Shown: positions 779-64,000 of the stretch, piece after piece | Numbering within the stretch: the first letter of the stretch is position 1 | How the letters are laid out: every line of letters begins with the position of its first letter | Assembly (NCBI GenBank): GCA_052426225.1 | Contig: JBNJNM010000009.1 | Location: forward strand, 1,332,323-1,396,322 | Source of the DNA: Zancudomyces culisetae HAW-14-8 | Taxonomy: Eukaryota > Fungi > Kickxellomycota | Reading direction: 5' to 3' | DNA length: 64,000 nt | Made by a program: the position numbers and the translations under genes | The notes under the pieces: generated by a model | What the model was told of the DNA's origin: nothing | Database searches by the model: none | What the model saw: only the letters and a program-made list of their open reading frames with translations

Positions 779-2218
779 ATGAGTGACAAGGAGAAGCAGG
801 AATTAACAACCATCAATCAGGATGAGGTTCTCACTCCCAGAGAACAAACAGTCGTCAAGCAATACCTCAAAAAGGTAGACATCAGAATCCTTCCCATATT
901 CTCATTGGTATACCTACTCGCTGTCATGGACCGTGCTAACATTGGATCTGCTATTAACCTGGGTCTTGGTGACACCGTCAAATTCACCAAACAACAAGCT
1001 CCATGGAACGTATCTATTTTTTTCGTATTCTACATCATCTGTGAAACACCAGCAAATATCCTTTTGAAGAAACTCAAGCCACATATCTGGTTCACAATCA
1101 TTGTCTGCGGTTGGTCAATTACATGTATCTTGATGACTTGGGCTAGAACCCCAGCAACTCTATTGACAGCCAGAGGCTTCTTGGGTGCCTTCGAATCCGG
1201 TCTTACACCAGGAGTGGTTGGATACATGCCATACTGGTACACTCGATCTGAAATTGGTTTACGTATGTCCATCTTCTTTGCTGCAGGTACACTTTCAGGT
1301 GTGTTTGGAGGACCGATCGCTGTGGGCCTCTCTAGTCTTACCATTGGAAACATTCCTTCGTATGCAATCATCTTCCTTATTGAAGGTATAGTATCCCTTT
1401 TAGTCGGTATCTCACTTTACTTCCTTGTGTACGATTACCCAGACACAGTCAAGTTCTTTACCCCTGAAGAAAAGGAACTCATTGTCCGCAGAATCACCAA
1501 TGATCAAGGTCTCGCCTCAAAGACAAGCATGTCAATGAAACAAACTATCAACGCACTATTAGACTGGAAAATGTGGCTATATGCCGTTATGTTCTTTGCT
1601 GTCAACTTTGCCGGTGTAACTCTTGGTGTATTTGGACCTGTACTTGTATCATCTTTGGGATTCAGCAGTATTAGAGGAACTTTGATGTCATCACTTCCTA
1701 ACGCTGCCGGATTTATTGGACAACTTCTGACAGGATACACAATGGCTAGATTCCCATTGTGGTTGAACTCTATTGTCTTTGCAGCTATTGGATGTTTCGG
1801 TATCTGTATGGTCGCATTCACACACTTCTCACCAGTGCCAAAACTTATTATGTTGTGTATTGGTGGATTCGGAGTGTTCCCAAATATTCCAATCATTGCC
1901 ACATGGATGTCTATTAACATGGGAGGTATTTCGAAGCGTATGGTTGCATCTGCAATGACAGTATCATTTGGTGGTATTGCAGGTATCACCGCACCACTTG
2001 CCTTCAACAAGGAGCTATATGCACCTAAGTTCACATTGGGTTTGGCTCTTAACACAGCATGTTTGGCACTCATTTGCGTTCTCGCTTTGTTCTTCAAGTT
2101 CTACTATGATATGGAGAACAGAAGAAGAGATAACAACCCAGTAGATGTATCACACCTGTCAGAGTTTGAACAACGTGAACTCAATGACAAGCACCCAGAT
2201 TTCAGATACAAACTCTAG
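779..2218 (+). CDS. MFS transporter, anion:cation symporter (Dal5/Tna1-like) family, copy 1
   Basis: Intronless 479-aa ORF with about 12 hydrophobic segments and family motifs KVDIRILP, DRANIG, RGFLGAFESG, WYTRSE, EN.RRD and C-terminal PDFRYKL. TATAAATA at about 668. Confidence 0.93.
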   Translation: MSDKEKQELTTINQDEVLTPREQTVVKQYLKKVDIRILPIFSLVYLLAVMDRANIGSAINLGLGDTVKFTKQQAPWNVSIFFVFYIICETPANILLKKLKPHIWFTIIVCGWSITCILMTWARTPATLLTARGFLGAFESGLTPGVVGYMPYWYTRSEIGLRMSIFFAAGTLSGVFGGPIAVGLSSLTIGNIPSYAIIFLIEGIVSLLVGISLYFLVYDYPDTVKFFTPEEKELIVRRITNDQGLASKTSMSMKQTINALLDWKMWLYAVMFFAVNFAGVTLGVFGPVLVSSLGFSSIRGTLMSSLPNAAGFIGQLLTGYTMARFPLWLNSIVFAAIGCFGICMVAFTHFSPVPKLIMLCIGGFGVFPNIPIIATWMSINMGGISKRMVASAMTVSFGGIAGITAPLAFNKELYAPKFTLGLALNTACLALICVLALFFKFYYDMENRRRDNNPVDVSHLSEFEQRELNDKHPDFRYKL

Positions 2219-13280: not shown

Positions 13281-13294
13281 GAGGGAGACTGAGG

Positions 13295-22100: not shown

Positions 22101-23455
22101 ACAGTCACAGATGGCCTAGTCAGATACAAGGGCCTAGTCTATGTTCCAGAACCACTTAGACTCCAAATCCTTGAAATGTGCCATGATTCACTGCTTGCTG
22201 GCCATTTCGGTAGAAGCAAGACACACAGCCTTATATCCCGTAATTATTGGTGGCCAGGAATTCGAACCACTATTCAGGAATACATCGACTCCTGTGAAAC
22301 GTGTAACCGCATCAAACATGTCACAACCAAGCCATCTGAAATGCTCATGCCATTAAACACCCCCAATCGTCCTTGGGAAGCTGTTTCTATGGATTTCATA
22401 GTGGAGTTACCTCGTTCTGAAGGTAATACTGTAGTCTTGGTGGTAGTGGACCGCTTAACCAAGATGGCCCACTTTATTCCGCTCAAGAGTACTCCGTCCG
22501 CTACAGAAACAGCCACAAAGTTTATGGAGTACGTTTTCAAGCTACACGGTATGCCACAAAGCATTGTTTCTGACCGTGGACCCCAGTTTGTTTCTAAGTT
22601 CTGGAGAGAACTAACTCGACTCCTAAAGATTGACTTGCACATGTCTACCGCATACCATCCACAGTCTGATGGTCAGACAGAACGAGTCAACCAGATACTC
22701 GAGCAGTATCTGCGTTGTTTCGTCAATTATCAACAAGACAATTGGGTCCAGCTTCTCCCCATGGCCGAGTTTGCATATAACAATGCGACTCATGCATCTA
22801 CCAAAGCCAGTCCCTTCTACGCTAACTATGGTTATGACCCTCAACTAACCATTGACCTAACCTCTGACTCCAAAGTACCTAGTGCGCTAGAATTTGCTAC
22901 TCATCTGAAAAACATTCAAGACCAACTCAAGTTACATCTAGAAACTGCCAAGAGTAACTATAAACGTTTTGCTGACAAAAAACGATCAGATACCCAAGAC
23001 TTCAAGCCAGGCTCCAAAGTATGGCTTTCTCAAGCCAATATCAAGACCATGCGACCATCGCACAAGTTAGACTTCAAATACATTGGTCCATTTGAAATTA
23101 TTGAGATGGTCAATCCTGTAACTGCTAAACTCAAGCTACCTGACAATATGAAAATTCATCCCGTCTTCCACGTGTCCCTGCTTAAACCACATAAACAGAC
23201 ATCATATTCTAACCGTACCCAACCACCCCACCTCCTATCATAGTAGACAATCAAGAAGAATACGAAGTATCTTCTATCCTGGACTCCAAGTTTGTTAAAA
23301 GGAAATTAAAGTATCTGATTGATTGGAAAGGATACAGTCCTGAAGATCGGACATGGGAATATGCTGAAGACGTTCATGCACCTGACCTCGTTGCCAAGTT
23401 CCATGCCAGATATCCAGAAAAGCCAGGACCGCGTGCCAGCATTAGAGAGGGATGA
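19128..23455 (+). CDS. Chromovirus B pol (PR-RT-RH-IN), with chromodomain 23237-23455 in the -1 frame
   Basis: IDSGA protease, YLDD, RNaseH CDAS, HHCC and DDE integrase. The ORF stops at 23243; YEVSSILDSK...YLIDWKGY follows in another frame. Confidence 0.93.
19795..20150 (+). repeat. Coding minisatellite (QENHS)n in the PR-RT spacer of element B
   Basis: Repeated CAAGAAAACCACAGC units with a higher-order duplication. Confidence 0.85.
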
Positions 23456-24427
23456 TGTCATGATTTATCATGCCATTTGTAATTAAATACACGTGTTGTA
23501 TTTAATTACTAAATTGCTGCGCAATTTTGTCAAAAATCATTTTGGGAAATTTAATTTTGTTGATTGCGCAGTAGATTAGGTAATTTAGAAACGTGTTAAA
23601 ATTACGACATTTTGCTGCGCAATTACACGTTTTACATTACTAATCAATTGATTATTAATCATTCTAGAATTCTAACATTCTAGAATTTTCTAAATAGTTA
23701 TAACAATGTTTTTCATAGTTTTTTAGTAGTTTTGGAAAAGTATATATAGCCATAGATTTTATTGAAAGAGAACTTCAGCAATAAAATATCTTCACAAGAT
23801 ATATACTACTTTAAATAACTAAATAATATAAAATAAAATAATACTTAGTTGTCAGGTCCTGACAACTCGTGCCTTTGGTGATCCCAACCCTATTGAGAAT
23901 GCTGATAGGGCAATCCGCCAACTCCGCCAAACCACTTCCGTTGCCGCATATGCCACCGAGTTTAGACGCCTACAGATGTTAATTGACTGGAACCAACCAC
24001 CTTTGATCTCACAGTTTCTATCCGGTCTCAAGTACAACGTATCCCAGGAACTCAACCGTAGAGAACAAATAGAAGACATCGATACCCTGATCTCTACAGC
24101 CATCCAGATCGACAACCGCCTCTTCAGCCATCCACAACGTCGTCAACCTCCAGTTAACCCCACTGCAACTATGCCACCCAAACCCACTGCTTACAACCCG
24201 TTTGCTTCACCTGTTTCTGCACCATCTACCACTCCACCAGCTAATAGTGATGGACCGCAACCAATGGATCTCAGTACCGCTTCATCGACTAGAAGACCAC
24301 CACTTACTCCTGCTCAAAGAGCATACCGTATCGAAAACAACCTCTGTCTCTATTGTGGCGGTAATGACCATTTCAACATCAACTGTCCAAAGAAACGCCA
24401 CAACATGTCCAGCATTACACCAACACA

Positions 24428-27400
24428 GGAAAACGACACCGCCCAGTAGACAGTAAGGGACACCTATTGGGCAACTTAGCCAGTCCCCACGCCACTGTAA
24501 CCACTCCTGTTTCTGACACCCAATCTCCTGATAAACCAAACACCTTGACCATTCCTGTAACCATCTTGTCCAAGCACCACCACATCAAAACCTACGCTAT
24601 GGTTGATTCTGGTGCTTCGTCCTCGTTCATTGACGCCAATTTTGCTCTAAAAAACAATCTACCATCTATATCTAGAAAAATGACAATCACGCTCGCTGAC
24701 GGATCAAAGCTTAGATCCAACTCTGCCTCCCAAGTATCACTAAAAATCAACGATAACCATCTCGAAAGTATCTATCTGCAACAAATAGACCTTGGATCTT
24801 CACCAATCATCCTTGGTCTTTCCTGGCTTCAACAACACAATCCTGACATCAACTGGACTGAGAACATAGTCCATCTGCCTTGTACCTTGACTTCTTGTGG
24901 GCCCAACCATGTCAACCTAGACATCTCTCTTGTGGGCTCAAACCAGTTTAAAGAACATCTGAAGGCACCAGACACTGTCTATGCTGGTGCAATTACCGTG
25001 AACAATCTTGAATCCCTTGTAGCTCCTGAATCTTGTGAAAATCTCTGTCTTGTCTCTGAATCTAATCCTGAAACCCCTGTTACTCCTGTATTCCCTGAAA
25101 AGTATAAAATGTTTGAATCTGTCTTCTCTGAATCCCAATCTGCCAAACTGCCTGAACATCGTCCATATGATCATACCATTCCTTTGCTTCCTGACTCAAA
25201 GATACCATATGGCCCATTGTACAACCTCTCCCAATTGGAACTAAAGACCCTGTACGACTACATTCAGGAAAACCTAGCCAATGGTTTTATCCAACGCTCT
25301 GAATCCCCGGCTGGGGCTCCCGTCCTATTTGTAAAAAAGAAAGATGGTAGTCTCCGGTTGTGCGTCGACTATAGAGCCCTGAATAAGATCACTGTCCCCA
25401 ACCGTGCAGCCTTGCCACTCATCTCTGAAACCTTGGATCGGCTTGGCAAAGCCAAGATATTCACCAAGCTGGATATGAAATCCGCATACCACATGATCAG
25501 GATCTCGCCTGGTGAAGAATGGAAGACCGCGTTTCGTACACGCTACGGCCACTTCGAGTATAAGGTCATGCCGTTTGGCCTTATGAATGCTCCAGCCACG
25601 TTCCAGTCCTTTGTTAACGATCTCTTCCGTGAATACATTGATCAATTCCTTGTTGTGTACATCGATGATCTGTTAATCTACTCAGATGATATCGATAAGC
25701 ACTATGACCACGTCTGCCTTGTCTTGAAGAAGCTTCAGGAACACAATCTCACCCTCAAGCTAGAGAAATGTGAGTTTGATGTACAATCAGTACAGTTCCT
25801 CGGTTTTGTAATTGGCCCCAACGGAATCTCTATGGATCCATCTAAAGTATCCAGCGTTACCGAATGGAAGACACCAACTTGTGTCCGTGACGTTCAGGTA
25901 TTCCTTGGCCTTACAAACTTCTACCGCCGTTTTATTTTGAACTACTCCAAGATATCTCTGCCGCTCACCGCCTTGTTGAAAAAAGGTGTCCAATTCCAGT
26001 GGACACCCAAAGCTGAAGAAGCTTTCGCCTTGCTAAAAGAAACCATGATCAGTAACCCAGTCTTAGCTCACTACAATCCTGACCAGCCTTGTATCATCGA
26101 AACCGATGCATCAGATTTTGCATTAGGTGCCATTTGCAGCCAGTATGACAACGAGGGACAACTCCACCCTGTTGCATACTACTCCCGCAAACTCCTGCCT
26201 GCTGAAGTGAATTATCAAATCTATGATAAGGAACTGTTAGCAATTATCGACGCTTTTGCTCACTGGCGTCACTACCTTGAATTTTCTGTACACCCAACCG
26301 TTGTTATGACCGACCATAAAAACTTGGAATACTTCTCCACTACCAGAAATCTTAGTCGCCGCCAAGTCAGATGGTCAGAATACCTCAGTAACTTCAACTT
26401 TGTCATCAAGTACCGCCCTGGAAAACAGAACACTGCCGCCGATGCTCTTTCTCGGAAAGACCAACCTTGGAAGGGGGGTGACTCCCGTACTGACCAAAAC
26501 AAAATAACTTTGCTGCCTCCTGAAATCTTCTTGAAGTCCATGACTAGTACACCTGTTGAACCTTTGTCATCCACGCTCATGAACAACATCAAGTCACTAC
26601 AACCCAAAGACACGTACTTTGGACCCATTTACACTGACTTATCCAAGAAACCTGATTCCCATGAAAAGTTCGCTCTTGTTGACAATCTTCTGCACTATGA
26701 TGGACTAATCTGTATCCCCTCAGACGACAACATCAAAAGAACAATTCTGATTGAATGCCATGATTCCCCTGCTGCCGGCCACTTTGGAAATGCAAAGACG
26801 TACGAACTTGTATCTCGCAACTTTTACTGGCCAACCATGAGAAAATATATCAAAGACTACATCTCTGGTTGCGATACCTGTCAACGCAACAAATCCTCTC
26901 GCCATAAACCATATGGCTACCTCGCTCCACTTCCCGTTCCTGATTCACCTTGGTCATCTGTTTCTGTCGACTTCATCACTCAGCTACCTCCATCCAATAA
27001 CTTTACTGCAATCTGTGTATTTGTGGATCGCCTTACCAAGATGGCGCATTTTGTTCCCACAACCAATGAAATTGATGCTGAAGGTACTGCAGATCTGTTT
27101 ATCCAACATGTCTTCTGCAAACATGGGCTCCCTAAAGACATCGTATCTGATAGAGGTGTGACCTTCAATTCATCATTCATGCGTACTCTAATGAAATCAC
27201 TGAATATTGAACAGAAAATGTCCACCGCATTCCATCCTCAGACAGATGGACAAACTGAACGCGTAAACTCAGTATTGGAACAGTATCTCAGGTGCTACAT
27301 TGATTACCAACAAACTGATTGGTCAAAGTGGTTACCAATTGCTGAATTCGCCTACAACAACACATCTCATGCTTCTACTAAAACCACACCTTTCTACGCC

Positions 27401-28045
27401 AACTATGGCTTCCATCCACGCTTCTCAGTCATAATCCCTCGTACTCAAGTTTTAAATCCTGCCTCCTCTGATAGATCCAAACGACTATCTGATATCCACC
27501 AAGAACTGAAGTTTAACATCTCCCTTGCCCTTGAAGACCATGAGAAATACTACAACCGAAAAGTATCATCACAACCTGACTTCAACATTGGTGATCTTGT
27601 CTATCTCTCAACTAAAAACATCAGGACTCAAAGACCAAGCAAGAAGCTTGACTATCGGAAACTTGGTCCATTCAAAGTATTGGAAAAGATTGGACAAAGA
27701 TCATACAAACTTCAGCTACCACACACAATGAAGATTCATCCAGTATTCCACGTCAATCTCCTTGAACATTGTAAACCAGATCTGATTCCAGACAGACTAT
27801 CAAAACCGCTTCCACCTGTGATCATTGACGGTCAAGAAGAATATGAAGTTGAGAAAATCCTAGACAGTAAAATATTTGGTAGAACTGTCAAATACCTGGT
27901 ACACTGGAAAGGATACCCAGACACTGAACGTACCTGGCAAACATATTCTGACTTAGCAAATGCAAATTATCTTGTCACTGAATTCCATCGTCACCATCCT
28001 GAAAAACCAAAGCCAACACAAATGCTTCACGGAGCTCAGCCTTAA
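24428..28045 (+). CDS. Chromovirus A pol (PR-RT-RH-IN-chromodomain), intact
   Basis: VDSGA, YIDD, TDAS, integrase core, and in-frame chromodomain YEVEKILDSK...YLVHWKGY. Reached from gag by a -1 shift. Confidence 0.95.
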   Translation, partial: GKRHRPVDSKGHLLGNLASPHATVTTPVSDTQSPDKPNTLTIPVTILSKHHHIKTYAMVDSGASSSFIDANFALKNNLPSISRKMTITLADGSKLRSNSASQVSLKINDNHLESIYLQQIDLGSSPIILGLSWLQQHNPDINWTENIVHLPCTLTSCGPNHVNLDISLVGSNQFKEHLKAPDTVYAGAITVNNLESLVAPESCENLCLVSESNPETPVTPVFPEKYKMFESVFSESQSAKLPEHRPYDHTIPLLPDSKIPYGPLYNLSQLELKTLYDYIQENLANGFIQRSESPAGAPVLFVKKKDGSLRLCVDYRALNKITVPNRAALPLISETLDRLGKAKIFTKLDMKSAYHMIRISPGEEWKTAFRTRYGHFEYKVMPFGLMNAPATFQSFVNDLFREYIDQFLVVYIDDLLIYSDDIDKHYDHVCLVLKKLQEHNLTLKLEKCEFDVQSVQFLGFVIGPNGISMDPSKVSSVTEWKTPTCVRDVQVFLGLTNFYRRFILNYSKISLPLTALLKKGVQFQWTPKAEEAFALLKETMISNPVLAHYNPDQPCIIETDASDFALGAICSQYDNEGQLHPVAYYSRKLLPAEVNYQIYDKELLAIIDAFAHWRHYLEFSVHPTVVMTDHKNLEYFSTTRNLSRRQVRWSEYLSNFNFVIKYRPGKQNTAADALSRKDQPWKGGDSRTDQNKITLLPPEIFLKSMTSTPVEPLSSTLMNNIKSLQPKDTYFGPIYTDLSKKPDSHEKFALVDNLLHYDGLICIPSDDNIKRTILIECHDSPAAGHFGNAKTYELVSRNFYWPTMRKYIKDYISGCDTCQRNKSSRHKPYGYLAPLPVPDSPWSSVSVDFITQLPPSNNFTAICVFVDRLTKMAHFVPTTNEIDAEGTADLFIQHVFCKHGLPKDIVSDRGVTFNSSFMRTLMKSLNIEQKMSTAFHPQTDGQTERVNSVLEQYLRCYIDYQQTDWSKWLPIAEFAYNNTSHASTKTTPFYANYGFHPRFSVIIPRTQVLNPASSDRSKRLSDIHQELKFNISLALEDHEKYYNRKVSSQPDFNIGDLVYLSTKNIRTQRPSKKLDYRKLGPFKVLEKIGQRSYKLQLPHTMKIHPVFHVNLLEHCKPDLIPDRLSKPLPPVIIDGQEEYEVEKILDSKIFGRTVKYLVHWKGYPDTERTWQTYSDLANANYLVTEFHRHHPEKPKPTQMLHGAQP

Positions 28046-29050
28046 AAGGGGAGGTCGTGTCATGAACTGATTCTAGAATGTTCGAAAACGTTCTAGAATC
28101 ATCGGATTTTATTCCGCAGTAATGTTTAGAATGTTCCCCAACATTCTAGAACATTACCGAAAATTCACATTATTTATTAATTTTTATTACGTAATAATTT
28201 TCACATGTTTAATTTTAATAGCATTCGAGTTTGAATTTTGTTTGATTACTAATCCAATTGGATTAGTAATCAAACACGTTTTTCTTTAGCTTGAATTTTT
28301 AGCTATTCCGCAGTTTTCATAGTGATTATGTTCAAAAACCAAGGCTGGAAAAAAGTATAAAAAGGGTACAAATTTCCTGTCTTGGATTCAGTATCTAGTA
28401 TCTTGTATACATTCATACTATAAACTTTAATAATAATAAATATAACTCTCCTGACTCCAGATCTTGACAGCTAGGTGCGACATACGACGATGTTATTGCA
28501 CAAGGATTTTGGGCAAGTAAAAGTATATTTGATACTTATTATCAATTATCACGTAGAACTCGTGAAAATTTAACTCAATTTATCTTGAACTCTGAAGCTA
28601 CATAATTGTATCTGGATAAGTGAAGCATAATAATATGTTTAGTTGAATGAAATGAAAACTTATTATTATTATGCGAACATCCAGATACAATTATGTCCCA
28701 CCCAATTCCCACCCATACCTAGCTCAACGATGGTAAAGATTCATCAGGAAACAGGGGACATCAGTTTATATATGGTTTAAATTTATTTTATTTAGTTAGT
28801 TTTAATTATTTTATAAAAATTATACAGTGATGTCTGTCATTACACACATCATTACGTATAAAGTTTTTAAATTTAAACACTCTTTTTATCGATTTAATAT
28901 TTTACCAAATTTTAAGGTAATGGATTAATCGATAAAAATAGTATCTAGGAAAGAATTTACGATTTATAATAAAGATTGGTACACACATAATTGTATCATG
29001 ATGTTCGCATAATAATAATAAGTTTTCATTTCATTCAATTAAACATATTA

Positions 29051-36813: not shown

Positions 36814-37724
36814 AAAAAATATATTTGAAGGTCGTTAATAATAATTATTGTGTTATTAACTCAAATTTTATTTTTACTATAAGTATGTACTATAAAATTC
36901 ACTTTGGGGTTTCCATCTTTTCTCGCTAATGACAAAAAAACTATATTAATAAAATTATTTAAGAATCAGTATTATTTAAAGTTAATTTTCTATTAGAATA
37001 ATTTTGTTTAACATACTAAATTACTTGAATTGAAATATATGTTATCAGTATAACATTGCCTTTTAAGCAATAGTGTTGAATTTGTTTAGCTGAAAAAAAC
37101 TATATTTAACCATACCTTTGCATTGAGATCATAATAATCAACAGCCTGCTTTGACGTTCTCTTTAAATTTTATTATCTGGAACGTATATTGAAGTTCTAT
37201 AACGAAGATATTAAATAATGTTAAAAGAATGGCATTCTTGAACAAAAAGTGAAATATAATTAAAATAATAAGGCCCTAAATTATAATCCAATGTTTTAAC
37301 AATTATTTATAGATATATCAAGTACAGTAGATTATTAAAGCTTAAACTATGTAGAGCTTTTAGAAAATAAAAGAGTATGGTAAGATATGAGCTAATTTCC
37401 GAAATTAATTATGAATAAAAAAATCTATTTTCAGCTGCTATTCGCATACTCACTATATTAGCATAGTAAAATAATCTTAGCCCTATTCAAAAGAAAATTA
37501 TTTTTAGTGAATTAACTAGTCTATTAATAAAGTCTAAATTAATTATATATTTGGATTAAAGTTTATTAAAAAATTATTTATAGAACATTTGAGTAATGCA
37601 ATAATAGTTTTAAGTAATAGTATAGATTGTATAGACCAGAATACAAGTGATTATCAACGCAAAGTAGAAGATAAATTATATTAAATAAAATAAAAATGAG
37701 TTAGATAATACAAATTAAACAAAA

Positions 37725-38972
37725 CTATTTCTCGATAACCAACTTGACAGTTTTATCAAAGCTCTGAACTGGTTCTTGTGCTATCTTGCGAATCAACTCA
37801 TGATAGTTTGATCCTGGTGTGATCTTACCAAGAACTGTATATTGTGATGCTCCAGTACACGATGGGATTTGACCTGGTCGGCCGTGTATACATTCATGAC
37901 CAATAAGTGCAAACATTGCTGCCTCTTTGCATGAAGCTGGTAATCCATACTCTTCTTTTGTCAAAAGTGTTACTTTTGTATTTGGCAGTCCCTTTCTAAT
38001 TCCTTCCATAACTACAGGATTGAAACCTCCTCCTCCATGAACAAAGATCTCCTCTACTGGCTCTGGCATAAAATCGTGGTATGATTGAACAACTGTGTCT
38101 ATTGTCAGCTGTGTGATGGTAGCAACCACATCATCTGGAGACATGTTTAGTTCTTCACATCTCTTAATCACCTCATCTGCATACGAATCGCTAAAAAGCT
38201 CACGTCCAGTGGTCTTTGGTAGCTGTTTCTTGTAGTATGGATTCTGCAAAAGCTCCTGCAATAACTCTGTGTTAACTTTACCACGAGATGCCATCTGACC
38301 ATCCTTATCAAATTGTTGTTGTCCACCAGTATAGTGTCTTACGGCGCGATCAATCAAAACGTTTGAAGGTCCTTGATCAAATGCAAACGCTGTGATTATT
38401 CCATTTTTCATTGATACGAATGTGGTGTTTGAAATTCCTCCCAAGTTTTGGTAAGCTCTTGTTCTTCCTTCCTCTGCACATAAAACAACATCCAAGAATG
38501 AAGTCAATGGTGCTCCCTGTCCTCCGTAAACCATATCTGCTACTCTCATATCATTTACAACTGTTCTCCCTGTTTCTTTGACAATCACCGACGATTCTCC
38601 GTTTTGCCATGTAGATTTGACCTCAGAGTCATCATCAACTTGATGCCACATAGTAATACCATGTGGTGCAATAACATCAATATCATCGTTTGTTAGTCCA
38701 TTCTTGTCCAAAAACTGACGAATAGCATCGGCAAACGCTTTTCCCACAAGGAAGTTCAACTGTGTTATTTCAGCTAGGTCTCCAGACTTTTTGTTAATCA
38801 TGCTCAATATTCTCTGCTTCAGCTTAATGTCATGAGGAACTTCATCATAGGCAATGACTTTTAATGACAGAGTACCTGTACCGTTTTCATTACGTTCCAC
38901 CTGTTTGAATTCACACAATGCGAGGTCAATACCGTCACATGCGGTTCCGCTGTTCATTCCAAGAACTCTCAT
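37725..38972 (-). CDS. anmK: Anhydro-N-acetylmuramic acid kinase / levoglucosan kinase family anhydro-sugar kinase
   Basis: 415 aa, intronless; motifs GMNSGTxxDGID, HGxT, DxRxxD...GGQGAPL, NLGGISN, FDxGPxN, PKTTGRELF, GGGxxN, KEAxxFA. Substrate unresolved. Confidence 0.92.
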   Translation of the reverse strand: MRVLGMNSGTACDGIDLALCEFKQVERNENGTGTLSLKVIAYDEVPHDIKLKQRILSMINKKSGDLAEITQLNFLVGKAFADAIRQFLDKNGLTNDDIDVIAPHGITMWHQVDDDSEVKSTWQNGESSVIVKETGRTVVNDMRVADMVYGGQGAPLTSFLDVVLCAEEGRTRAYQNLGGISNTTFVSMKNGIITAFAFDQGPSNVLIDRAVRHYTGGQQQFDKDGQMASRGKVNTELLQELLQNPYYKKQLPKTTGRELFSDSYADEVIKRCEELNMSPDDVVATITQLTIDTVVQSYHDFMPEPVEEIFVHGGGGFNPVVMEGIRKGLPNTKVTLLTKEEYGLPASCKEAAMFALIGHECIHGRPGQIPSCTGASQYTVLGKITPGSNYHELIRKIAQEPVQSFDKTVKLVIEK

Positions 38973-39360
38973 TTTTAATGTATTTTTCTTGTAGTTTTCC
39001 TTTTTTTAGATCACTTGTTGATTCAAAGTTTATAGACTAGTCTTTAATAATCAGACCCAGATATTTGTTTTCAGCTTTATTGAGTTTTGATGAACAAAGA
39101 ACAAAGCCGGTGATAGATATATTTGTTGTTACTCTATTTACCGAAACCCGAGATGGATAAATAGGTGAACTTATACATTTTTCATTAACAATAAATGGAC
39201 GTAAAAAAAATATACGTTTTTCATTTAAAACCAAGATCCAAAATGTGAATATTCAAATAGGCGAGAATTGTCATTCTAGTAATTTACAGGCCTGAAAATT
39301 ATTGTAATAGAACATGTTTGAAAAATGAAGTAATACTGGAAAATATAAATGAGACGAATA

Positions 39361-39420
39361 AAAATGAAAAAATAAATGAAAAAAATGAAAAAAATGAAAA
39401 AAATGAAAAAAATGAAAAAG
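39361..39420 (+). repeat. (AAAAAAATG)n tandem repeat in the anmK-MFS intergenic region
   Basis: About 5-6 visible 9-bp units. Confidence 0.7.
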
Positions 39421-41111
39421 TAGTACTGAATAGGACAACATTAAAGATAGACATTTATGTTGTGGCAGAGAAAACATAAAATTATGGCCAGAGCTTGAGG
39501 CAATATAAAAAAAAACCGCACGACCTGCTCTGCTTTACAAAAATGAGATGATTCACCATTTGAACTTGTGTTTTCTGCACAGATATTGCTTGATGGCCAT
39601 AAACATGGATATAAACATGGCCATAAACATAGACACTCTTTGAGAATTAGGTAATAAGGGGGTTATTAGCTAATTGAAGCCAGTTTCATTTCCCAAAGCC
39701 AATTCGATGCTTTTCTATTTTTACTTGGAAAAATATCCAATGAACAACATATCAATAGCCAATCTGGGACCTTGGAGGGGGGGAAAGGGGGTATAATCAC
39801 ATATTTTGGGTATCAATGGAGTACAGGTATGTAAATTGTCAACAAGGTATAAACAAACTTGGTTTTGGGTTTCATAAAGTAACTGCTGAAACATATTACC
39901 AATAATATTTATACCATTAGATAACAAATTTAGAACAACAACCTCAAATAATACATATTGAATACCAAGTTCAGATTTTCACTAATTATGGTGTATACCG
40001 GTCAATTATAAGCGATACTTTTAACATTTTTGTATCTTTGGTGACTAACAAAAATGTGAATTGGATATCTTTTATAATTGATGTACTCGAGTTATATAAA
40101 TGGAATTTGTAGTAGTTCAGTTAATAATTCACAATGGTATTTTTAACATTTTATTGATATCTAAATTTTTCCAGTAATTAAATTGTGCTATAAATCAACC
40201 GATAATTTGCCGGTTTTTTCATAAGCTTTCAATCAGTTTATTTTTATTGTAATTAGAATGATTTTTTTTTTAATTTCAGTCTTTTGATTTGTAGATTTAA
40301 ATTGATTATTGGCTCTAGTTAACTGTTTAACTCAAATAAACCAATTTTAAAATTCATCTAAATATTAAGATAACAAAATGTACTCTAGAAAATAAACATA
40401 ATTGGAATAACAGCTTGAATCATGCACTGAATCAGCTAATACCCCTTTATTTTTTTGATAATTATAAATCTATATCAATTTTTAAATCATGCTGCCTATT
40501 GGCCAATTACAAAAAGTCTTGGATATACACAAATGGTAATTAAAATCTAGAAAAAACAGTAGGTATAGTGCCTAGGTGTAAACTAAAAAAACTTGGACTC
40601 GATCCTTCATTTAATCAAAATTAACCCTTACAGTTTGATTTGACACTAAATTTAATTTGATTAAAAGATTCCTTAAAAAGAAATATTTTGGAGGTCAATG
40701 AGAATTTCTCTTGGAAAAAACTCAATTGATTTAATTCTACGGACTTTCATTACGTATTAGCGATAATTAAAATTAAATTTATTCATTAGAATTAGGTAGG
40801 ATGTAGAAACGGTAGTCAATTATATTTAGCTTTACATAAAGGCCCATCACATGATACTACTGCTCATTACACAAATTGACAAATCTCAATTTTATTGTAA
40901 TTGAAACACGTTAGACTAGTAAACAATTCAAGCTGCATTTACATAGGTAGATGAACTAAATCAATTGAGTTTTTAGAAAAAATGCTTTTGAAATTAGTAT
41001 AAATAGTTGATCCCATGGCCTCCCATGAACACCATGAACATTAAATAATTTTCTACGGAAAATAATTTTGTTATTGATATTCATTTATAAATTATAAACT
41101 TAATTTTCAAA

Positions 41112-42551
41112 ATGAGTGACAAGGAGAAGCAGGAATTAACAACCATCAATCAGGATGAGGTTCTCACTCCCAGAGAACAAACAGTCGTCAAGCAATACCT
41201 CAAAAAGGTAGACATCAGAATCCTTCCCATATTCTCATTGGTATACCTACTCGCTGTCATGGACCGTGCTAACATTGGATCTGCTATTAACCTGGGTCTT
41301 GGTGACACCGTCAAATTCACCAAACAACAAGCTCCATGGAACGTATCTATTTTCTTCGTATTCTACATCATCTGTGAAACACCATCAAATATCCTTTTGA
41401 AGAAACTCAAGCCACATATCTGGTTCACAATCATTGTCTGCGGTTGGTCAATTGTGTGTATCTTGATGACTTGGGCTAGAACCCCAGCAACTCTATTGAC
41501 AGCCAGAGGCTTCTTGGGTGCCTTCGAATCCGGTCTTACACCAGGAGTGGTTGGATACATGCCATACTGGTACACTCGATCTGAAATTGGTTTACGTATG
41601 TCCATCTTCTTTGCTGCAGGTACACTTTCAGGTGTGTTTGGAGGACCGATCGCTGTGGGCCTCTCTAGTCTTACCATTGGAAACATTCCTTCGTATGCAA
41701 TCATCTTCCTTATTGAAGGTATAGTATCCCTTTTAGTCGGTATCTCACTTTACTTCCTTGTGTACGATTACCCAGACACAGTCAAGTTCTTTACCCCTGA
41801 AGAAAAGGAACTCATTGTCCGCAGAATCACCAATGATCAAGGTCTCGCCTCAAAGACAAGCATGTCAATGAAACAAACTATCAACGCACTATTAGACTGG
41901 AAAATGTGGATGTATGCCGTTATGTTCTTTGCTGTCAACTTTGCCGGTGTAACTCTTGGTGTATTTGGACCTGTACTTGTATCATCTTTGGGATTCAGCA
42001 GTATTAGAGGAACTTTGATGTCATCACTTCCTAACGCTGCCGGATTTATTGGACAACTTCTGACAGGATACACAATGGCTAGATTCCCATTGTGGTTGAA
42101 CTCTATTGTCTTTGCAGCTATTGGATGTTTCGGTATCTGTATGGTCGCATTCACACACTTCTCACCAGTGCCAAAACTTATTATGTTGTGTATTGGTGGA
42201 TTCGGAGTGTTCCCAAATATTCCAATCATTGCCACATGGATGTCTATTAACATGGGAGGTATTTCGAAGCGTATGGTTGCATCTGCAATGACAGTATCAT
42301 TTGGTGGTATTGCAGGTATCACCGCACCACTTGCCTTCAACAAGGAGCTATATGCACCTAAGTTCACATTGGGTTTGGCTCTTAACACAGCATGTTTGGC
42401 ACTCATTTGCGTTCTCGCTTTGTTCTTCAAGTTCTACTATGATATGGAGAACAGAAGAAGAGATAACAACCCAGTAGATGTATCACACCTGTCAGAGTTT
42501 GAACAACGTGAACTCAATGACAAGCACCCAGATTTCAGATACAAACTCTAG
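41112..42551 (+). CDS. MFS transporter, ACS (Dal5/Tna1-like) family, copy 2
   Basis: 479 aa with 3 amino-acid differences from 779-2218; TATAAATA at about 40998; divergent from anmK. Confidence 0.93.
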   Translation: MSDKEKQELTTINQDEVLTPREQTVVKQYLKKVDIRILPIFSLVYLLAVMDRANIGSAINLGLGDTVKFTKQQAPWNVSIFFVFYIICETPSNILLKKLKPHIWFTIIVCGWSIVCILMTWARTPATLLTARGFLGAFESGLTPGVVGYMPYWYTRSEIGLRMSIFFAAGTLSGVFGGPIAVGLSSLTIGNIPSYAIIFLIEGIVSLLVGISLYFLVYDYPDTVKFFTPEEKELIVRRITNDQGLASKTSMSMKQTINALLDWKMWMYAVMFFAVNFAGVTLGVFGPVLVSSLGFSSIRGTLMSSLPNAAGFIGQLLTGYTMARFPLWLNSIVFAAIGCFGICMVAFTHFSPVPKLIMLCIGGFGVFPNIPIIATWMSINMGGISKRMVASAMTVSFGGIAGITAPLAFNKELYAPKFTLGLALNTACLALICVLALFFKFYYDMENRRRDNNPVDVSHLSEFEQRELNDKHPDFRYKL

Positions 42552-42854
42552 TTTTATTTTTGCTATATCATTTTTGTAGTGCAAATATGAGCTACTCTTA
42601 TATATTCTGATTGTTATTATTGGTAATTAATATGGATAAAATATTCTATCAACATTTTTGAATAAAATATTTATATTTACAGCTATAGGCTAAAGAAAGA
42701 TACAAATGATTCGATAGAAATATGTCGAATTATTCGCGGTTGCAGCAAAGTTGGATAACGCCGACCCCCTTCCCCCACTCGCACATAAGATTATGTATTT
42801 TTTGATTATAACCTGCTGTTTTGTATATTCCAAATATTTGATCTTGAGTTAAAC

Positions 42855-43438
42855 CTACAACTTATATACACTGAACATAAGCTAGGATTTATGGAGATGG
42901 GGAAGATAAGAACAGGTAGGTTCTAGACAGCAGAGAGGCTGGCAAAATTGGGAACAATAGATGAAAAGTTCAAGACTAGATGCCCATTTTGTAAAAAAAA
43001 AAACAGCGCTGAAACTATTGAACACATGTTACTGGACTGTAAATACTGGGCTGGAGTTAGGTATAAAACTCTGGAACGTATCCCAGATATGTCAATTATA
43101 GGAAGTCAGGAGAGAGGTAGTAGTGAAGGATGGCGGAATTTTTTTGTAGGGCGACTCCTTGGAGGGGAGTCAAAAAGAATGGTTACTCTCTCCGTTAAGA
43201 AGAGAGAAACCGAAGCACCGTCTTTGGTTGAGCTGGTAACGGCACAATTTTTGGACGGAATATGTCGAACGAGGATGCAAATCTTAGACCGACTTAGATC
43301 AGAAACAACCTCCTTGAACCAAAGCCCGGTGGGTATGGAGTCCCTAGAGGAACGGAGGGGAATTGGTTAGGTAGATATTTTGTAGGATTATTTTTTGTAG
43401 TTTTATGGGATATTTATTTAATAAATTTATCTAACAAA
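42855..43438 (+). mobile_element. LINE 3' fragment, copy 2
   Basis: Near-identical to 2520-3111; ends ATCTAACAAA with only a 3-nt A run. Confidence 0.75.
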
Positions 43439-44240
43439 TATTACATGTACCAGAATCGGACTGTCATAAACACCATAACACTAGCTATCCTCTTGAATAC
43501 CCTTCAATACTAGACCGGAACAAGCGTCGATCAAATGTGTGGCACATATCATACCACCTGACTGGTATGTACTCTTGAAAAATAAAGCCAAAGGCTGAAA
43601 AAACGCTCATCTTTCTTTCTATGCATAGCGTTTTTTACAACTACCAGTCCTGACAAGTTTTAAGATTGCCAGTGCACTTATTCAGAAGATCTATCCGTTT
43701 TTGGATGATTTTTACTTGCTCTGAGGTACGGGTTTACATGGTTTTGAGCTTTGGTGTTTCTCAAAACATATTTTTCTCATCACTTGGCATATATTATTGG
43801 CCAGATGTGTGTTTGGCCAACAGATATTCAGTATAATTTACGTAGATTACTCGCAATCAATCTGCAAAGATGGGTATTTTATAATCTACGAATTCTGCTA
43901 GAAATTGAGATTTGATTGCTCGAAATTACAAAGAAAAATACGCGTCCAGTATGCCTGATTGCATGAAACAAAGATGGTAAACATGATTTAGCAATTCCAG
44001 CAAATAATTTGATTTTCATCTATACTAATGGTTTCATAAAGTTTTATTCTTTTCTGACTCTAATCAGTTGTAAGATCTAGATGGATTTCATTTGTGATTA
44101 TGTAGGAAATACTATATAAGCCGAACAAATCTGTGTGTTTCTTTTTGAATTCCACGTTATTCCGTATTAAAATATCTAATTATACTTGTTCATAATTGGT
44201 TTTAACAAAAGACAAATACAAGGCTAGATATATAATAATA

Positions 44241-45338
44241 ATGAAATTAAACAATAAAATTTTCCGTAAACATGTCGTTACAACATTATCACTTGGAGGT
44301 ATTGCTATTGCACATGCCGCCTCAGTTGGTAATTTAGATTTGGATGCACTCATGCCACAAAACGAATCAGGCGATCTTAACTATGCTAGAATACTAAATG
44401 GGGAATCAGCAAAGAGAGAGGATTTTCCATATATTCAAGTCGTGAGTGCGTTCGTAGGAGATGCTCCTAGAATGTGTCATGCTTCATTAATATCTGATAA
44501 AATAGTAATAACTGCAGCTAGCTGTTTCTCAGACAAGAACGGCGAGCTCACAAAATATGTTAACGCTACAGGAGTTTTTATCGGAACAGGAGCATCAAGT
44601 TTTGGTCCCATGGCTTACATTATAACGCGTGGAGTGCATATTCATCCCGATTTTTCACCTGTGACATTAGAAAATGACATAGCAGCTATCGAGCTAAACA
44701 CTACAATACCAAAAATATTTGCCACACCAGTAGCGATTTACAGTGGAAGTGTAACGGATGATATGAATTTAGTTACAGTAGGTTGGGATCTCACTTCGAC
44801 TGGACTATCGGATTTACCAGATAAAAAACTAAACAGAATTGCACAGTCGCCTTCTTCTTCAAGTGTTTGTAAAGATGCCAATGCCAACTGGTCAGATAAT
44901 AACAAAAATGTTGTTTGTACACTAGTAAACAATGATAAAGGTTTAGCAAATGGTGATAGTGGAAGCCCCTTGACATACGTGAATAACAAAGTTAATTTAC
45001 TTGTTGGTATCGCGAGTAATACAGGTAGATCTGGGAGTGGTGCAACTATTCTTCCGGAAGATGCTAAAACGAACTATTATACTCATGTATACAGCTACAT
45101 TGACTGGATTGTAAAAGTTACAGGAATTGAGAAATCGTACCTACTGGATACAACTGCACGACCCTCACCTGACTATTCAAAAATTAATGATACAAACACA
45201 GATACAGATAAAAACACAGATACCGATAAAAACACTGGTGGGAATCATAGTACTTCCACTTCCGCCTCAACTATTTTGCAGAGTACTGGGTTTACACTAG
45301 TGATGCTATTATCTTCAATGTTAGTTTTACTATTTTAG
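44241..45338 (+). CDS. Trypsin-like (S1) serine protease homolog, secreted and probably GPI-anchored, catalytic His replaced
   Basis: First ATG at 44241; signal peptide, R/ILNG activation site, TAASC in place of TAAHC, NDIA, GDSGSP, S/T-rich stalk and hydrophobic C-terminus. Confidence 0.88.
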   Translation: MKLNNKIFRKHVVTTLSLGGIAIAHAASVGNLDLDALMPQNESGDLNYARILNGESAKREDFPYIQVVSAFVGDAPRMCHASLISDKIVITAASCFSDKNGELTKYVNATGVFIGTGASSFGPMAYIITRGVHIHPDFSPVTLENDIAAIELNTTIPKIFATPVAIYSGSVTDDMNLVTVGWDLTSTGLSDLPDKKLNRIAQSPSSSSVCKDANANWSDNNKNVVCTLVNNDKGLANGDSGSPLTYVNNKVNLLVGIASNTGRSGSGATILPEDAKTNYYTHVYSYIDWIVKVTGIEKSYLLDTTARPSPDYSKINDTNTDTDKNTDTDKNTGGNHSTSTSASTILQSTGFTLVMLLSSMLVLLF

Positions 45339-60760: not shown

Positions 60761-61442
60761 CCTATGTAATTCATTAATATGACTTTAGTCATTGTTACTA
60801 GTGCATTTAGGTCTATGTAATTATTCTCTGACAAGATAGTATAAGATATTATATATTGATCTGACAAACTTCATGAAATTATCTATTTTTGTGTAATTTG
60901 GTGAATATTAAGTATTACTATAATTATATTTATTGTTGACACTTGTTGTCTGATAAGTTTTTCTGAAGTAAATATATGCTAGTATAAGTTTTTGTTTGTA
61001 ATATTAAAATTTAAAATAAAAACTAAAATGTTGCATAAATAGAAAGTAGTTAAAATTAATGAACTATTTAAAGAAAAGTTGTGTTTTGTGCTAGTTTCAA
61101 TATTAAACATGTTTAAAATCATATTTCTGATTCATCCAAATCATGTTTGATATTGTTTGTTGATTTAATTATAACTTATTAATATTAGTTTATGACAATC
61201 AGTTGGATTTTTTTATTGGTGGCTTTTTATATTATCGTAAAACAGTGAGCTATAATGATAATAGCTATCTTTTGAGTTACTGGAGAGTTACTGTTTATAA
61301 CTGCAATGAATTTAAGCGTGTTAGGATTTAACATATTATTTTCAAGTTCAGCTTCTTTAGTAGAGTTTCTCATTCAGGTTGATAACTTTGCAGTCAAAGA
61401 AGCGATTATGTTAGCAGTTTTCATGAAGATTCGATTGATTTC

Positions 61443-61595
61443 GGGATAGGGAACGGGATAGAGATAGGAAACGGGAACGGGATATGAATATGGAACGGGA
61501 TAGGGATAGGGATAGGGATAGGGATAGGGATAGGGATAGGGATAGGGTTAGGGATAGGGATAGGGATAGGGATAGGGATAGGGATAGGGATAGGG
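61443..61595 (+). repeat. Proximal variant telomere repeats (GGGATA, GGGAAC)
   Basis: Degenerate hexamers grading into two (GGGATA)n blocks separated by one GGGTTA. Confidence 0.9.
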
Positions 61596-64000
61596 TTAGG
61601 GTTAGGGTTAGGGTTAGGGTTAGGGTTAGGGTTAGGGTTAGGGTTAGGGTTAGGGTTAGGGTTAGGGTTAGGGTTAGGGTTAGGGTTAGGGTTAGGGTTA
61701 GGGTTAGGGTTAGGGTTAGGGTTAGGGTTAGGGTTAGGGTTAGGGTTAGGGTTAGGGTTAGGGTTAGGGTTAGGGTTAGGGTTAGGGTTAGGGTTAGGGT
61801 TAGGGTTAGGGTTAGGGTTAGGGTTAGGGTTAGGGTTAGGGTTAGGGTTAGGGTTAGGGTTAGGGTTAGGGTTAGGGTTAGGGTTAGGGTTAGGGTTAGG
61901 GTTAGGGTTAGGGTTAGGGTTAGGGTTAGGGTTAGGGTTAGGGTTAGGGTTAGGGTTAGGGTTAGGGTTAGGGTTAGGGTTAGGGTTAGGGTTAGGGTTA
62001 GGGTTAGGGTTAGGGTTAGGGTTAGGGTTAGGGTTAGGGTTAGGGTTAGGGTTAGGGTTAGGGTTAGGGTTAGGGTTAGGGTTAGGGTTAGGGTTAGGGT
62101 TAGGGTTAGGGTTAGGGTTAGGGTTAGGGTTAGGGTTAGGGTTAGGGTTAGGGTTAGGGTTAGGGTTAGGGTTAGGGTTAGGGTTAGGGTTAGGGTTAGG
62201 GTTAGGGTTAGGGTTAGGGTTAGGGTTAGGGTTAGGGTTAGGGTTAGGGTTAGGGTTAGGGTTAGGGTTAGGGTTAGGGTTAGGGTTAGGGTTAGGGTTA
62301 GGGTTAGGGTTAGGGTTAGGGTTAGGGTTAGGGTTAGGGTTAGGGTTAGGGTTAGGGTTAGGGTTAGGGTTAGGGTTAGGGTTAGGGTTAGGGTTAGGGT
62401 TAGGGTTAGGGTTAGGGTTAGGGTTAGGGTTAGGGTTAGGGTTAGGGTTAGGGTTAGGGTTAGGGTTAGGGTTAGGGTTAGGGTTAGGGTTAGGGTTAGG
62501 GTTAGGGTTAGGGTTAGGGTTAGGGTTAGGGTTAGGGTTAGGGTTAGGGTTAGGGTTAGGGTTAGGGTTAGGGTTAGGGTTAGGGTTAGGGTTAGGGTTA
62601 GGGTTAGGGTTAGGGTTAGGGTTAGGGTTAGGGTTAGGGTTAGGGTTAGGGTTAGGGTTAGGGTTAGGGTTAGGGTTAGGGTTAGGGTTAGGGTTAGGGT
62701 TAGGGTTAGGGTTAGGGTTAGGGTTAGGGTTAGGGTTAGGGTTAGGGTTAGGGTTAGGGTTAGGGTTAGGGTTAGGGTTAGGGTTAGGGTTAGGGTTAGG
62801 GTTAGGGTTAGGGTTAGGGTTAGGGTTAGGGTTAGGGTTAGGGTTAGGGTTAGGGTTAGGGTTAGGGTTAGGGTTAGGGTTAGGGTTAGGGTTAGGGTTA
62901 GGGTTAGGGTTAGGGTTAGGGTTAGGGTTAGGGTTAGGGTTAGGGTTAGGGTTAGGGTTAGGGTTAGGGTTAGGGTTAGGGTTAGGGTTAGGGTTAGGGT
63001 TAGGGTTAGGGTTAGGGTTAGGGTTAGGGTTAGGGTTAGGGTTAGGGTTAGGGTTAGGGTTAGGGTTAGGGTTAGGGTTAGGGTTAGGGTTAGGGTTAGG
63101 GTGGGTAGGTTGGGGTGGGGTGGGTTAGGGTAGGGTTGGGGTGGGTGGGTTGGGGAGGGGTGGGGTGGGTTAGGGGTGGGTGTAGGGTGGGTAGGGTAGG
63201 GGTAGGGTTAGGGTTAGGGGGTGGGTGAGGGTGTGGGTTAGGGTAGGGGTTGGGGTAGGGGTTAGGGTAGGGTGTGGGTTAGGGTTAGGGGTAGGGTTGG
63301 GGTAGGGTGAGGGTTAGGGGTTGGGTTGGGTGAGGGGTAGGGGTTGGGGTAGGGGTAGGGTTAGGGTTAGGGTTAGGGTGGGTAGGGGTTGGGTTAGGGT
63401 TGGGTTGGGGGTAGGGTGTAGGGGTAGGGGTAGGGTGGGTAGGGTTGGGTTGGGTTAGGGGTGGGGTAGGGTGTGGGGTAGGGTTAGGGTTAGGGGTAGG
63501 GGTTAGGGTTAGGGTTGGGGGTGGGGTAGGGGTAGGGTTAGGGTTGGGGGTGGGTTAGGGTTGGGTTAGGGGTGGGGTGAGGGTTAGGGGTGGGTTGGGT
63601 GGGGTGGGGGTGGGGTAGGGGTTGGGGTAGGGGGTGGGGGTGGGGTAGGGGTAGGGTTAGGGTTGGGGTAGGGGTAGGGGTGGGGTTGGGGTGGGGGTGG
63701 TGGGTAGGGGTTGGGGTAGGGGTGGGGAGGGGTTGGGTAGGGTTGGGGTTGGGGTGGGGGTGGGGTGGGGTGGGGTGGGGTGGGGGAGGGGTGGGGTAGG
63801 GGTAGGGTGAGGGTTGGGGTAGGGGTGGGGGTAGGGGTTGGGGGTGGGGGTGGGGTGGGGGTGGGGGTGGGGTAGGGGGTTGGGGGTGGGGTGGGGTGGG
63901 GTAGGGGTAGGGTTAGGGGTAGGGGTGGGGTAGGGTGAGGGGTGAGGGTAGGGGGTGGGGTAGGGTTGGGGTGAGGGTAGGGTTAGGGTTAGGGGTAGGG
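61596..64000 (+). repeat. Telomere (TTAGGG)n
   Basis: About 251 perfect units at 61596-63101, then noisy G-rich repeats to the window end; G strand points outward. Confidence 0.98.

Follow-up and report, generated by a model that had tools for sequence, protein, structure and literature searches.

At the subtelomeric end of a contig from Zancudomyces culisetae HAW-14-8 (Kickxellomycota), a Harpellales fungus of mosquito-larva hindguts, the gene of an AnmK-type anhydro-sugar kinase lies head to head with that of an ACS-family transporter that belongs to the major facilitator superfamily (MFS), and together with a nearby fusion gene containing MurQ these genes probably encode, as far as sequence can indicate, a pathway for feeding on the sugars of bacterial cell walls. 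Catabolism of N-acetylmuramic acid (MurNAc) is regarded as a bacterial trait, in which AnmK converts 1,6-anhydro-N-acetylmuramic acid (anhMurNAc) into MurNAc-6-phosphate, MurQ cuts the lactyl ether, NamZ supplies MurNAc, and NagA and NagB finish the route. The window, that is, the whole stretch of DNA analysed (64,000 nucleotides; GenBank assembly GCA_052426225.1, contig JBNJNM010000009.1, here contig C9, positions 1,332,323 to 1,396,322 of the forward strand), is the final 64 kb of a telomere-bearing contig of ~1.4 Mb in a genome of 27.1 Mb and 25 contigs; window position 1 follows C9:1332322 directly, and negative positions lie upstream of the window. An earlier note on this DNA had proposed that the kinase would act on anhMurNAc and not on levoglucosan, and that the kinase-transporter pair would salvage a bacterial wall sugar. 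This proposal is supported by the MurQ, NamZ, NagA and NagB genes that we located in the genome, by the operon of the closest bacterial relative of the kinase, and by the AnmK residues and family threshold of the kinase itself.

Consistent with the earlier description, both open reading frames (ORFs) of the pair are intact and diverge from a spacer of 2,139 bp, in which we found short low-complexity ORFs and no credible ORF. The pair lies ~19 kb from a TTAGGG-type telomeric array that runs from ~61.3 kb to the contig end, so its placement as subtelomeric holds (Table 1). The kinase-MFS module is present twice, with the second copy (copy A) 40,333 bp upstream of the window copy (copy B), and at copy A the set is complete, in the order MurQ-BadF fusion (-), kinase (-) and MFS (+), over a span of 8.4 kb (C9:1326105-1334540). 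Fusion, kinase and MFS are physically linked in the number, at least three pathway genes, by which a fungal gene cluster is recognized. A search of the genome for MurQ, one of the checks suggested in the earlier note, returned a single locus in 27 Mb (C9:1327071-1327940; 387.5 bits on TIGR00274 in a genome-wide family search, against a cut-off of 302), and this sole MurQ belongs to an ORF whose start lies 1,642 bp downstream from kinase copy A, and which continues into a MurK/NagK-type kinase.

Residues 12-306 of the fusion constitute a MurNAc-6-phosphate etherase (NF003915, 408 bits; TIGR00274, 385 bits with the same cut-off of 302) with 53% identity to E. coli MurQ across 289 residues without a gap. 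E83 and E114 of E. coli MurQ, reported to be catalytic (Hadi et al. 2008), are conserved in the alignment as E92 and E123 of the fusion. Neighbours of the MurQ half in the atlas were 100% bacterial. Residues 322-588 match the BadF/BcrAD-type ATPases (PF01869, 80.4 bits), and among solved structures this half is best matched by the N-acetylmuramic acid/N-acetylglucosamine (GlcNAc) kinase 8ZO3 (64.7 bits), which we group with the MurK enzymes of Clostridium acetobutylicum and Tannerella forsythia, followed by human NAGK (60.7 bits). Preference for MurNAc or GlcNAc among MurK/NagK-type kinases is not readable from sequence (PMC10465942). Bacterial MurQ-BadF fusions have the same two-domain architecture and are 40-45% identical to the fungal protein over the full length, but the Z. 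culisetae-type gene is fungal and has introns in some species.

The kinase matched the Pfam AnmK family PF03702 from end to end with 320.6 bits, its residues 1-386 covering positions 1-366 of the 367 in the profile, a family that also includes the levoglucosan kinases (LGKs). On the NCBIfam AnmK equivalog NF007148 it scored 401.7 bits against a cut-off of 387; of the controls, two other Harpellales kinases (P0002 and P0004) reached 395-411 and the Ktedonospora kinase 443, while three LGK orthologues fell below the cut-off at 366-374. The Dikarya relatives are true LGK orthologues (P0069, 681 bits against the Lipomyces LGK). PaAnmK residues D14, T97, R129, D182 and E326 correspond to D13, T107, R143, D199 and E350 of the kinase, and the FDxGP Asp (D199, in FDQGP) and KEA Glu (E350) had accordingly been read correctly as retained. 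Since these catalytic and substrate residues of PaAnmK are also kept in LGK, they do not discriminate between the two enzymes, and T97 and R129, the anhMurNAc-contact residues, were rejected as a discriminator because they are uninformative, being kept in both.

To separate AnmK from LGK, diagnostic columns (n = 21) were taken as those at least 85% conserved within bacteria and within the LGK clade and differing between the two, among 104 bacterial, nine LGK-clade and five Harpellales sequences. The Harpellales kinases carried the bacterial state at 17 of these columns, the LGK state at two and another residue at two. Residues H110, Q123, G151 (GGQGAP) and T373/G374 (CTGA) of the kinase are the same in all 104 bacterial AnmKs, including that of E. 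coli, and are L, T, R, V and E, respectively, in the LGK clade, which bears out the AnmK-like internal motifs that the earlier note had pointed to. By identity, the nearest relatives of the kinase are those of other Harpellales (61-67%), followed by Ktedonobacteria (47-50%), other Chloroflexota-type sequences and then Dikarya (40-41%). The closest bacterial relative, the Ktedonospora kinase (50% identity), is encoded in an operon whose genes run Amidase_2, sugar ABC transporter, NamZ, AnmK, MurQ, GH3 and GNAT, so AnmK and MurQ are adjacent there. Because of its relatives, the NF007148 threshold, the diagnostic columns and the MurQ context, we favour AnmK over LGK and regard the kinase as rather likely to be an AnmK within a MurNAc/anhMurNAc catabolic pathway.

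Genes for the remaining steps are found elsewhere in the genome. A search for muramidase homologues, also proposed earlier, recovered NamZ exo-beta-N-acetylmuramidase (PF07075 and PF20732) at four loci (218-238 bits, one with a stop codon; Table 1), and one NamZ ORF examined has a signal-peptide-like sequence after an internal Met. The nearest atlas cluster of NamZ/DUF1343 is 66% eukaryotic, mainly Ascomycota, so this enzyme is not exclusive to Harpellales among fungi. The two NamZ copies on contig C15 have equal scores and are separated by 35.6 kb close to where that contig starts, another case, besides the kinase-MFS module, of a peptidoglycan gene duplicated in a subtelomeric position. At C7:44287-49768, 44-50 kb from the contig start, a NagB-type isomerase gene lies 4 kb from that of a NagA-type deacetylase, which was matched as two exon-sized pieces (219 bits). 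This arrangement resembles a small GlcNAc-catabolism pair, and the genome contains one GH20 hexosaminidase.

In the pathway that we propose, for which we infer all substrates, the direction and cargo of the MFS, the secretion of NamZ and the co-regulation of the genes, secreted NamZ would free MurNAc from glycan ends in the larval gut, and gut bacteria and the host would provide turnover fragments with anhMurNAc. The ACS-type MFS would import the carboxylated sugar together with protons, R52 pairing with the lactyl carboxylate and D51 and E139 carrying H+. Inside the cell the kinase would open the 1,6-anhydro ring and phosphorylate O6 to give MurNAc-6-phosphate, the BadF-type half of the fusion would phosphorylate plain MurNAc, and the MurQ half would strip D-lactate to leave GlcNAc-6-phosphate, which NagA and NagB would turn into fructose-6-phosphate.

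The transporter belongs to the ACS/SLC17 carriers (TC 2.A.1.14), a family known to carry carboxylated sugars such as galactonate and sialic acid; we know of no ACS member that carries MurNAc. Its best NCBIfam model was ACS/D-galactonate TIGR00893 (181 bits, below the cut-off of 395) and its only solved relative was DgoT (43 bits), of which residues D46, R47, R126 and E133 correspond to D51, R52, R132 and E139 of the MFS. The fold, the Asp-Arg pair of transmembrane helix 1 (TM1) and the Arg and Glu of TM4 are as in E. coli DgoT, human sialin and yeast Dal5/Tna1. The carboxyl of the substrate pairs with R47 in DgoT, where D46 and E133 serve as proton sites (PMC6532931). These residues would fit an anionic substrate for the Z. 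culisetae MFS, but are common to the whole ACS family. The closest relatives of the MFS are Harpellales paralogues, followed by Jimgerdemannia (41%) and by Mortierella and Dikarya (~30%), affinities that mark it as a native gene from a Harpellales-specific expansion. That it serves as the MurNAc/anhMurNAc importer of the kinase pathway has, in our estimate, close to an even chance. Next to another close relative of this MFS, on contig MBFU01000103.1 of GCA_003097675.1, a 363-aa protein with a weak SBP_bac_6 match is encoded at a distance of 2 kb (L024 5995-7086, -).

For conservation of the kinase-MFS linkage, a check suggested in the earlier note, the picture across Harpellales was mixed. A same-subfamily MFS lies 0.9 kb from the Smittium simulii kinase, tail to tail, but the divergent arrangement was found only in Z. 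culisetae. The S. simulii neighbour is not itself the closest relative of the Z. culisetae MFS (45% identity, compared with 56% for P0126), but in the MFS tree it groups (support 97) with P0125 and P0126, two of the closest ones, outside a clade of 29 other paralogues. With ~30 ACS loci in 27 Mb, we estimate that a kinase and an MFS would adjoin within ~2 kb by chance in ~1% of genomes, and the recurring pairing is on this account suggestive, not conclusive. In the other Harpellales species the kinase, fusion and MFS are on separate contigs, and the S. culicis contig ends at the kinase.

Phylogenetic analyses placed the kinase firmly among Harpellales sequences of bacterial affinity. In a quick tree of 118 rows, rooted on E. 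coli AnmK, the Harpellales kinases were monophyletic (support 100) and fell within a set of 46 rows (support 95) together with Ktedonobacteria and the LGK clade, to which they were sister (SH-like approximate likelihood ratio test, 92) with a long-branch warning. A more careful analysis of 53 rows lost this sister relation and grouped Harpellales weakly with Ktedonospora/Ktedonobacter (67/22). The phylogeny requested in the earlier note thus gives the Harpellales kinases a clade of their own, not placed inside that of the characterized LGK orthologues, but their position relative to the LGK clade differs between the trees. A bacterial, Chloroflexota-type origin of the kinase is well supported by these sequence relationships, and the trees disagree on whether fungi acquired it once or twice, since the 118-row tree joins Harpellales with LGK and the 53-row tree does not. 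Stem lengths were 1.1-1.7 substitutions per site for LGK and 0.7-0.9 for Harpellales, and the much longer LGK stem fits a functional change on the LGK branch.

Orthologues of the fusion in the other Harpellales recovered share 57-60% identity and, with the Z. culisetae protein, form one clade (support 100). The next relatives are the bacterial fusions of the same architecture, of which the few that are taxon-named come from Gemmataceae metagenome-assembled genomes and the rest are unnamed metagenome proteins, and no non-Harpellales fungus appeared among the best 120 matches. NamZ and an SSF symporter precede the bacterial fusion on one metagenome contig, whose protein cluster is named Gemmataceae by NCBI. 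Kinase and fusion were found in every Harpellales recovered, with orthologues in six Harpellales assemblies. Proteins of one of these, GCA_003097675.1, are labelled both Furculomyces boomerangus (P0002 and P0209) and Smittium angustum (P0122), and P0002 is identical in GCA_003086725.1.

Homology between the two copies of the Z. culisetae module is limited to two blocks of 99.1-99.4% identity. Block 1 comprises the kinase with 21 nt of its 3' flank and ~925 nt of its 5' flank (37704-39897 corresponding to -2719..-533 in a self-BLAST), and block 2 runs precisely from the MFS ATG to 887 nt beyond the MFS stop. The 1.2-1.3 kb directly 5' of each MFS (39898-41111 in copy B; 1-778 and the preceding 533 nt in copy A) show no similarity between copies and are each single-copy in the genome, so the two MFS copies have different promoters. 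A simple segmental duplication of the module is ruled out by homology that is confined to two blocks and begins precisely at the MFS ATG; the pattern could have arisen if the coding blocks underwent gene conversion or if a promoter was replaced. Across species, RPS7e adjoins the fusion in S. simulii and GCA_003097675.1 yet is on contig C11 in Z. culisetae, and Syf1 has the kinase nearby in two species, S. simulii and S. megazygosporum, but the fusion nearby in GCA_003097675.1. On the simplest reading of these neighbourhoods the pathway genes would have been ancestrally dispersed or loosely linked and would then have been joined at the C9 subtelomere in Z. culisetae.

Several observations weigh against the pathway as proposed, and the alternatives that they favour differ in how much of it they would remove. 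Contamination or misassembly would remove all of it, and the nearest relatives of the kinase and the fusion outside Harpellales are indeed bacterial. This explanation is refuted, and in our judgement practically out of the question, because both genes lie on a 1.4-Mb contig with a telomere, among fungal transporters and retroelements, and are also together on one 40-kb contig of an older independent assembly (P0001 and P0206); their orthologues of 57-67% identity in other Harpellales neighbour RPS7e, Syf1, RPS2 and similar genes of the ribosome and spliceosome; translation of the fusion gene is not colinear in S. simulii and GCA_003097675.1, which implies introns; and GC (0.41-0.44) and GC3 (0.33-0.42) of both genes are within the native range. 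It is also very unlikely that the kinase acts on levoglucosan as its relatives in Dikarya do, feeding glucose-6-phosphate into glycolysis, with its linkage to MurQ and the MFS coincidental. Such a reading can draw on the solved structures, to which the kinase is nearer on the side of the Lipomyces LGK (332-354 bits) than of the proteobacterial AnmKs (164-175 bits), on the sister grouping in the 118-row tree, and on the phosphorylation of levoglucosan by fungal proteins that carry an AnmK annotation (PMC9476349). Two cautions concern the AnmK reading itself. The kinase exceeds the NF007148 cut-off by a narrow margin of ~15 bits, and residue 200 of FDQGP, directly after the catalytic Asp, is Q in five of five Harpellales and T in the 104 bacterial AnmKs and the Dikarya LGK clade, and could mark a shifted specificity. 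The sister grouping, however, carries its long-branch warning and dissolves in the 53-row tree, the LGK state occurs at just two of 21 diagnostic columns, the LGK orthologues fail the cut-off that the kinase passes, MurQ adjacency has no role in levoglucosan use, and levoglucosan, as a pyrolysis product, would be an unlikely nutrient in a larval hindgut.

A more limited alternative accepts the kinase and MurQ fusion as a real MurNAc/anhMurNAc pathway and regards the MFS as a bystander, a subtelomeric ACS paralogue for a vitamin, allantoate or another organic anion. The MFS family has more than 25 paralogues in the genome; NCBI names the protein automatically as 'high-affinity nicotinic acid transporter'; no pathway genes lie beside the related P0122, P0126 and P0152 (the last the sister of the S. 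simulii neighbour MFS); no MFS was found within the available kinase flank at three Harpellales loci, those of GCA_003097675.1/GCA_003086725.1 (named Furculomyces boomerangus), S. mucronatum and S. megazygosporum; and the two MFS copies do not share their promoter-proximal 1.2 kb. Set against these points are the recurrence of the adjacency in S. simulii with the same MFS subfamily, at the low chance estimated above, the suitability of MurNAc, itself a carboxylated sugar, for a family of this substrate range, and the presence of no other transporter in the cluster when bacterial counterparts always have one, so that we consider a bystander MFS unlikely. Less probable again is a genuine pathway that operates in signalling or host interaction, clearing immunostimulatory peptidoglycan fragments or sensing bacterial density. 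The acquired anmK and murQ genes of ticks and ants have been discussed as serving symbiont control or immunity, and Z. culisetae is reported to change the mosquito microbiota (PMC7393158), but a catabolic route complete down to NagA and NagB, several copies of NamZ and a kinase-MFS module present in duplicate fit flux over sensing. Two further points bear on the nutritional pathway as a whole. The window copy consists of kinase and MFS only, with no MurQ, and, though the fungus encodes enzymes from the exo-muramidase to fructose-6-phosphate, genome family searches for a GH25 lysozyme and for muramoyl-alanine amidases of the Amidase_2 and Amidase_3 types found none, so peptide removal and endo-cleavage would have to come from enzymes of the host or of bacteria.

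Beyond the nutritional pathway itself, a broader account can be offered, to which we assign somewhat less than an even chance. Harpellales would feed on bacterial walls by a complete MurNAc/anhMurNAc route drawn from separate bacterial acquisitions (a Chloroflexota/Ktedonobacteria-like AnmK and a MurQ-MurK fusion), complemented by multi-copy NamZ, and in Z. culisetae these genes would have been gathered with a recruited native ACS transporter into a subtelomeric, partly duplicated cluster. The MFS would then be the first MurNAc/anhMurNAc:H+ symporter from a eukaryote, and the LGKs of Dikarya would represent a neofunctionalized branch of the same AnmK lineage.

The proposed fungal route has the same enzymes and logic as bacterial MurNAc/anhMurNAc recycling, as in E. 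coli (AnmK, MurQ and MurP), the NamZ/MurQ operons of the B. subtilis type and Ktedonospora formicarum. It differs in that the transporter is a native ACS-type MFS in place of a PTS (MurP), ABC or SSF system, and in that the genes are monocistronic, subtelomeric and partly duplicated, with no amidase or NagZ-type GH3 in the cluster; as the eukaryotic host has no peptidoglycan of its own, the process would be scavenging, not recycling. A bacterial precedent for pairing AnmK with an anion:H+ MFS, though an unrelated one, is found on a plasmid of Streptomyces sp. NBC_00069 (NZ_CP108251.1; L025 492-2992), where an MHS-family MFS gene overlaps AnmK by 4 nt in a bacterial operon; this MFS belongs to TIGR00883, not ACS, and has no sequence similarity to the Z. 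culisetae transporter. The Streptomyces pair has the appearance of a two-gene uptake-and-trapping operon for an anhydro-sugar acid. Compared with the Lipomyces starkeyi LGK (PDB 4YH5, 4ZLU), which shares the PF03702 fold and mechanism family, is the closest solved structure and has, like the Harpellales kinase, a beta-hairpin four residues longer than that of PaAnmK, the Harpellales enzyme forms its own clade and keeps the AnmK-invariant residues, and LGK has no reported association with MurQ.

Other eukaryotic acquisitions have only recently been reported, as single genes in ticks (anmK) and Camponotini ants (murQ) and as a gene set in anaerobic ciliates (NamZ, anmK and murQ), the last interpreted as a complete peptidoglycan-degrading route (PMC13198582; bioRxiv 10.64898/2026.03.13.711553; PMC13320244). 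In these lineages, as in Harpellales, bacterial peptidoglycan-sugar genes have become fixed in a eukaryote living with or on bacteria; the present case differs in its fungal host, clustered genes, host-derived transporter and MurQ in the form of a kinase fusion, and in the nearest bacterial relatives, which are Chloroflexota-type for the kinase and mostly unnamed for the fusion, the few named being Gemmataceae. For fungi there was only older speculation, based on AnmK-like kinases that were suggested to target the peptidoglycan of bacteria (Dai et al. 2015, as cited in PMC10570956). Public annotation already labels the three proteins automatically as AnmK, MurNAc-6-P etherase and nicotinic acid transporter. 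We found no published account of a MurNAc/anhMurNAc pathway or cluster in a fungus in the literature searched, and the Harpellales genome papers searched make no mention of muramic, etherase or AnmK. We read the locus as a probable peptidoglycan-sugar pathway of bacterial type that has been put together anew as a gene cluster in a fungus, with a native transporter recruited to it.

Features of the locus are listed in Table 1. Within the duplicated 3' flank of the MFS, a 140-aa ORF (42948-43370, +) is similar in appearance to a non-LTR reverse transcriptase's zinc-binding tail and has no Pfam match. The next gene past the module is a 380-aa ORF (44196-45338, +) with a Trypsin domain (82.7 bits) and a C-terminus that is hydrophobic and rich in Ser/Thr. 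Between the module copies, positions 10880-29050 contain long ORFs, the largest of 1,381 aa, together with inverted repeats of 296 nt (12029-12324 and 28726-29021).

Table 1. Features of the C9 subtelomere and NamZ loci of Z. culisetae HAW-14-8. Positions refer to the window unless a contig is named; L003 = C9:1322324-1332322.
Feature	Position	Strand	Remarks
AnmK-type anhydro-sugar kinase, copy B (415 aa)	37725..38972	-	Intact ORF; PF03702 320.6 bits
Kinase-proximal part of spacer	38973..39897	.	Common to both module copies, ~99% identical; no credible ORF
MFS-proximal part of spacer	39898..41111	.	Exclusive to copy B; single-copy in genome
ACS-family (SLC17/DgoT/Dal5-type) MFS, predicted organic-anion:H+ symporter, copy B (479 aa)	41112..42551	+	Intact ORF; MFS_1 120.8 bits
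Duplicated 3' flank of MFS	42552..43438	+	Block 41112-43438 = 779-3103 at 99.4%
MFS copy A	779..2218	+	476/479 aa identical to MFS copy B
Kinase copy A	-2697..-1450 = C9:1329625-1330872 (L003:7302-8549)	-	413/415 aa identical to copy B
MurQ-BadF fusion (625 aa)	-6217..-4340 (L003:3782-5659)	-	Upstream of window
TTAGGG-type telomeric array	61338..64000	+	Contig C9 end
NamZ loci	C15:20008-20658; C15:55579-56229; C21:1645203-1645853; C21:2614387-2615040		

Overall, the Z. culisetae locus provides an example of a eukaryotic metabolic gene cluster whose members differ in origin. Should the pathway work, it would link a widespread mosquito-gut fungus to the gut microbiota in a concrete, nutritional way, and would supply a candidate eukaryotic transporter of muramic-acid sugars. 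Bacterial AnmK, the Harpellales kinase and the Dikarya LGK would then also form a natural series for studies of substrate change in the anhydro-sugar kinases.

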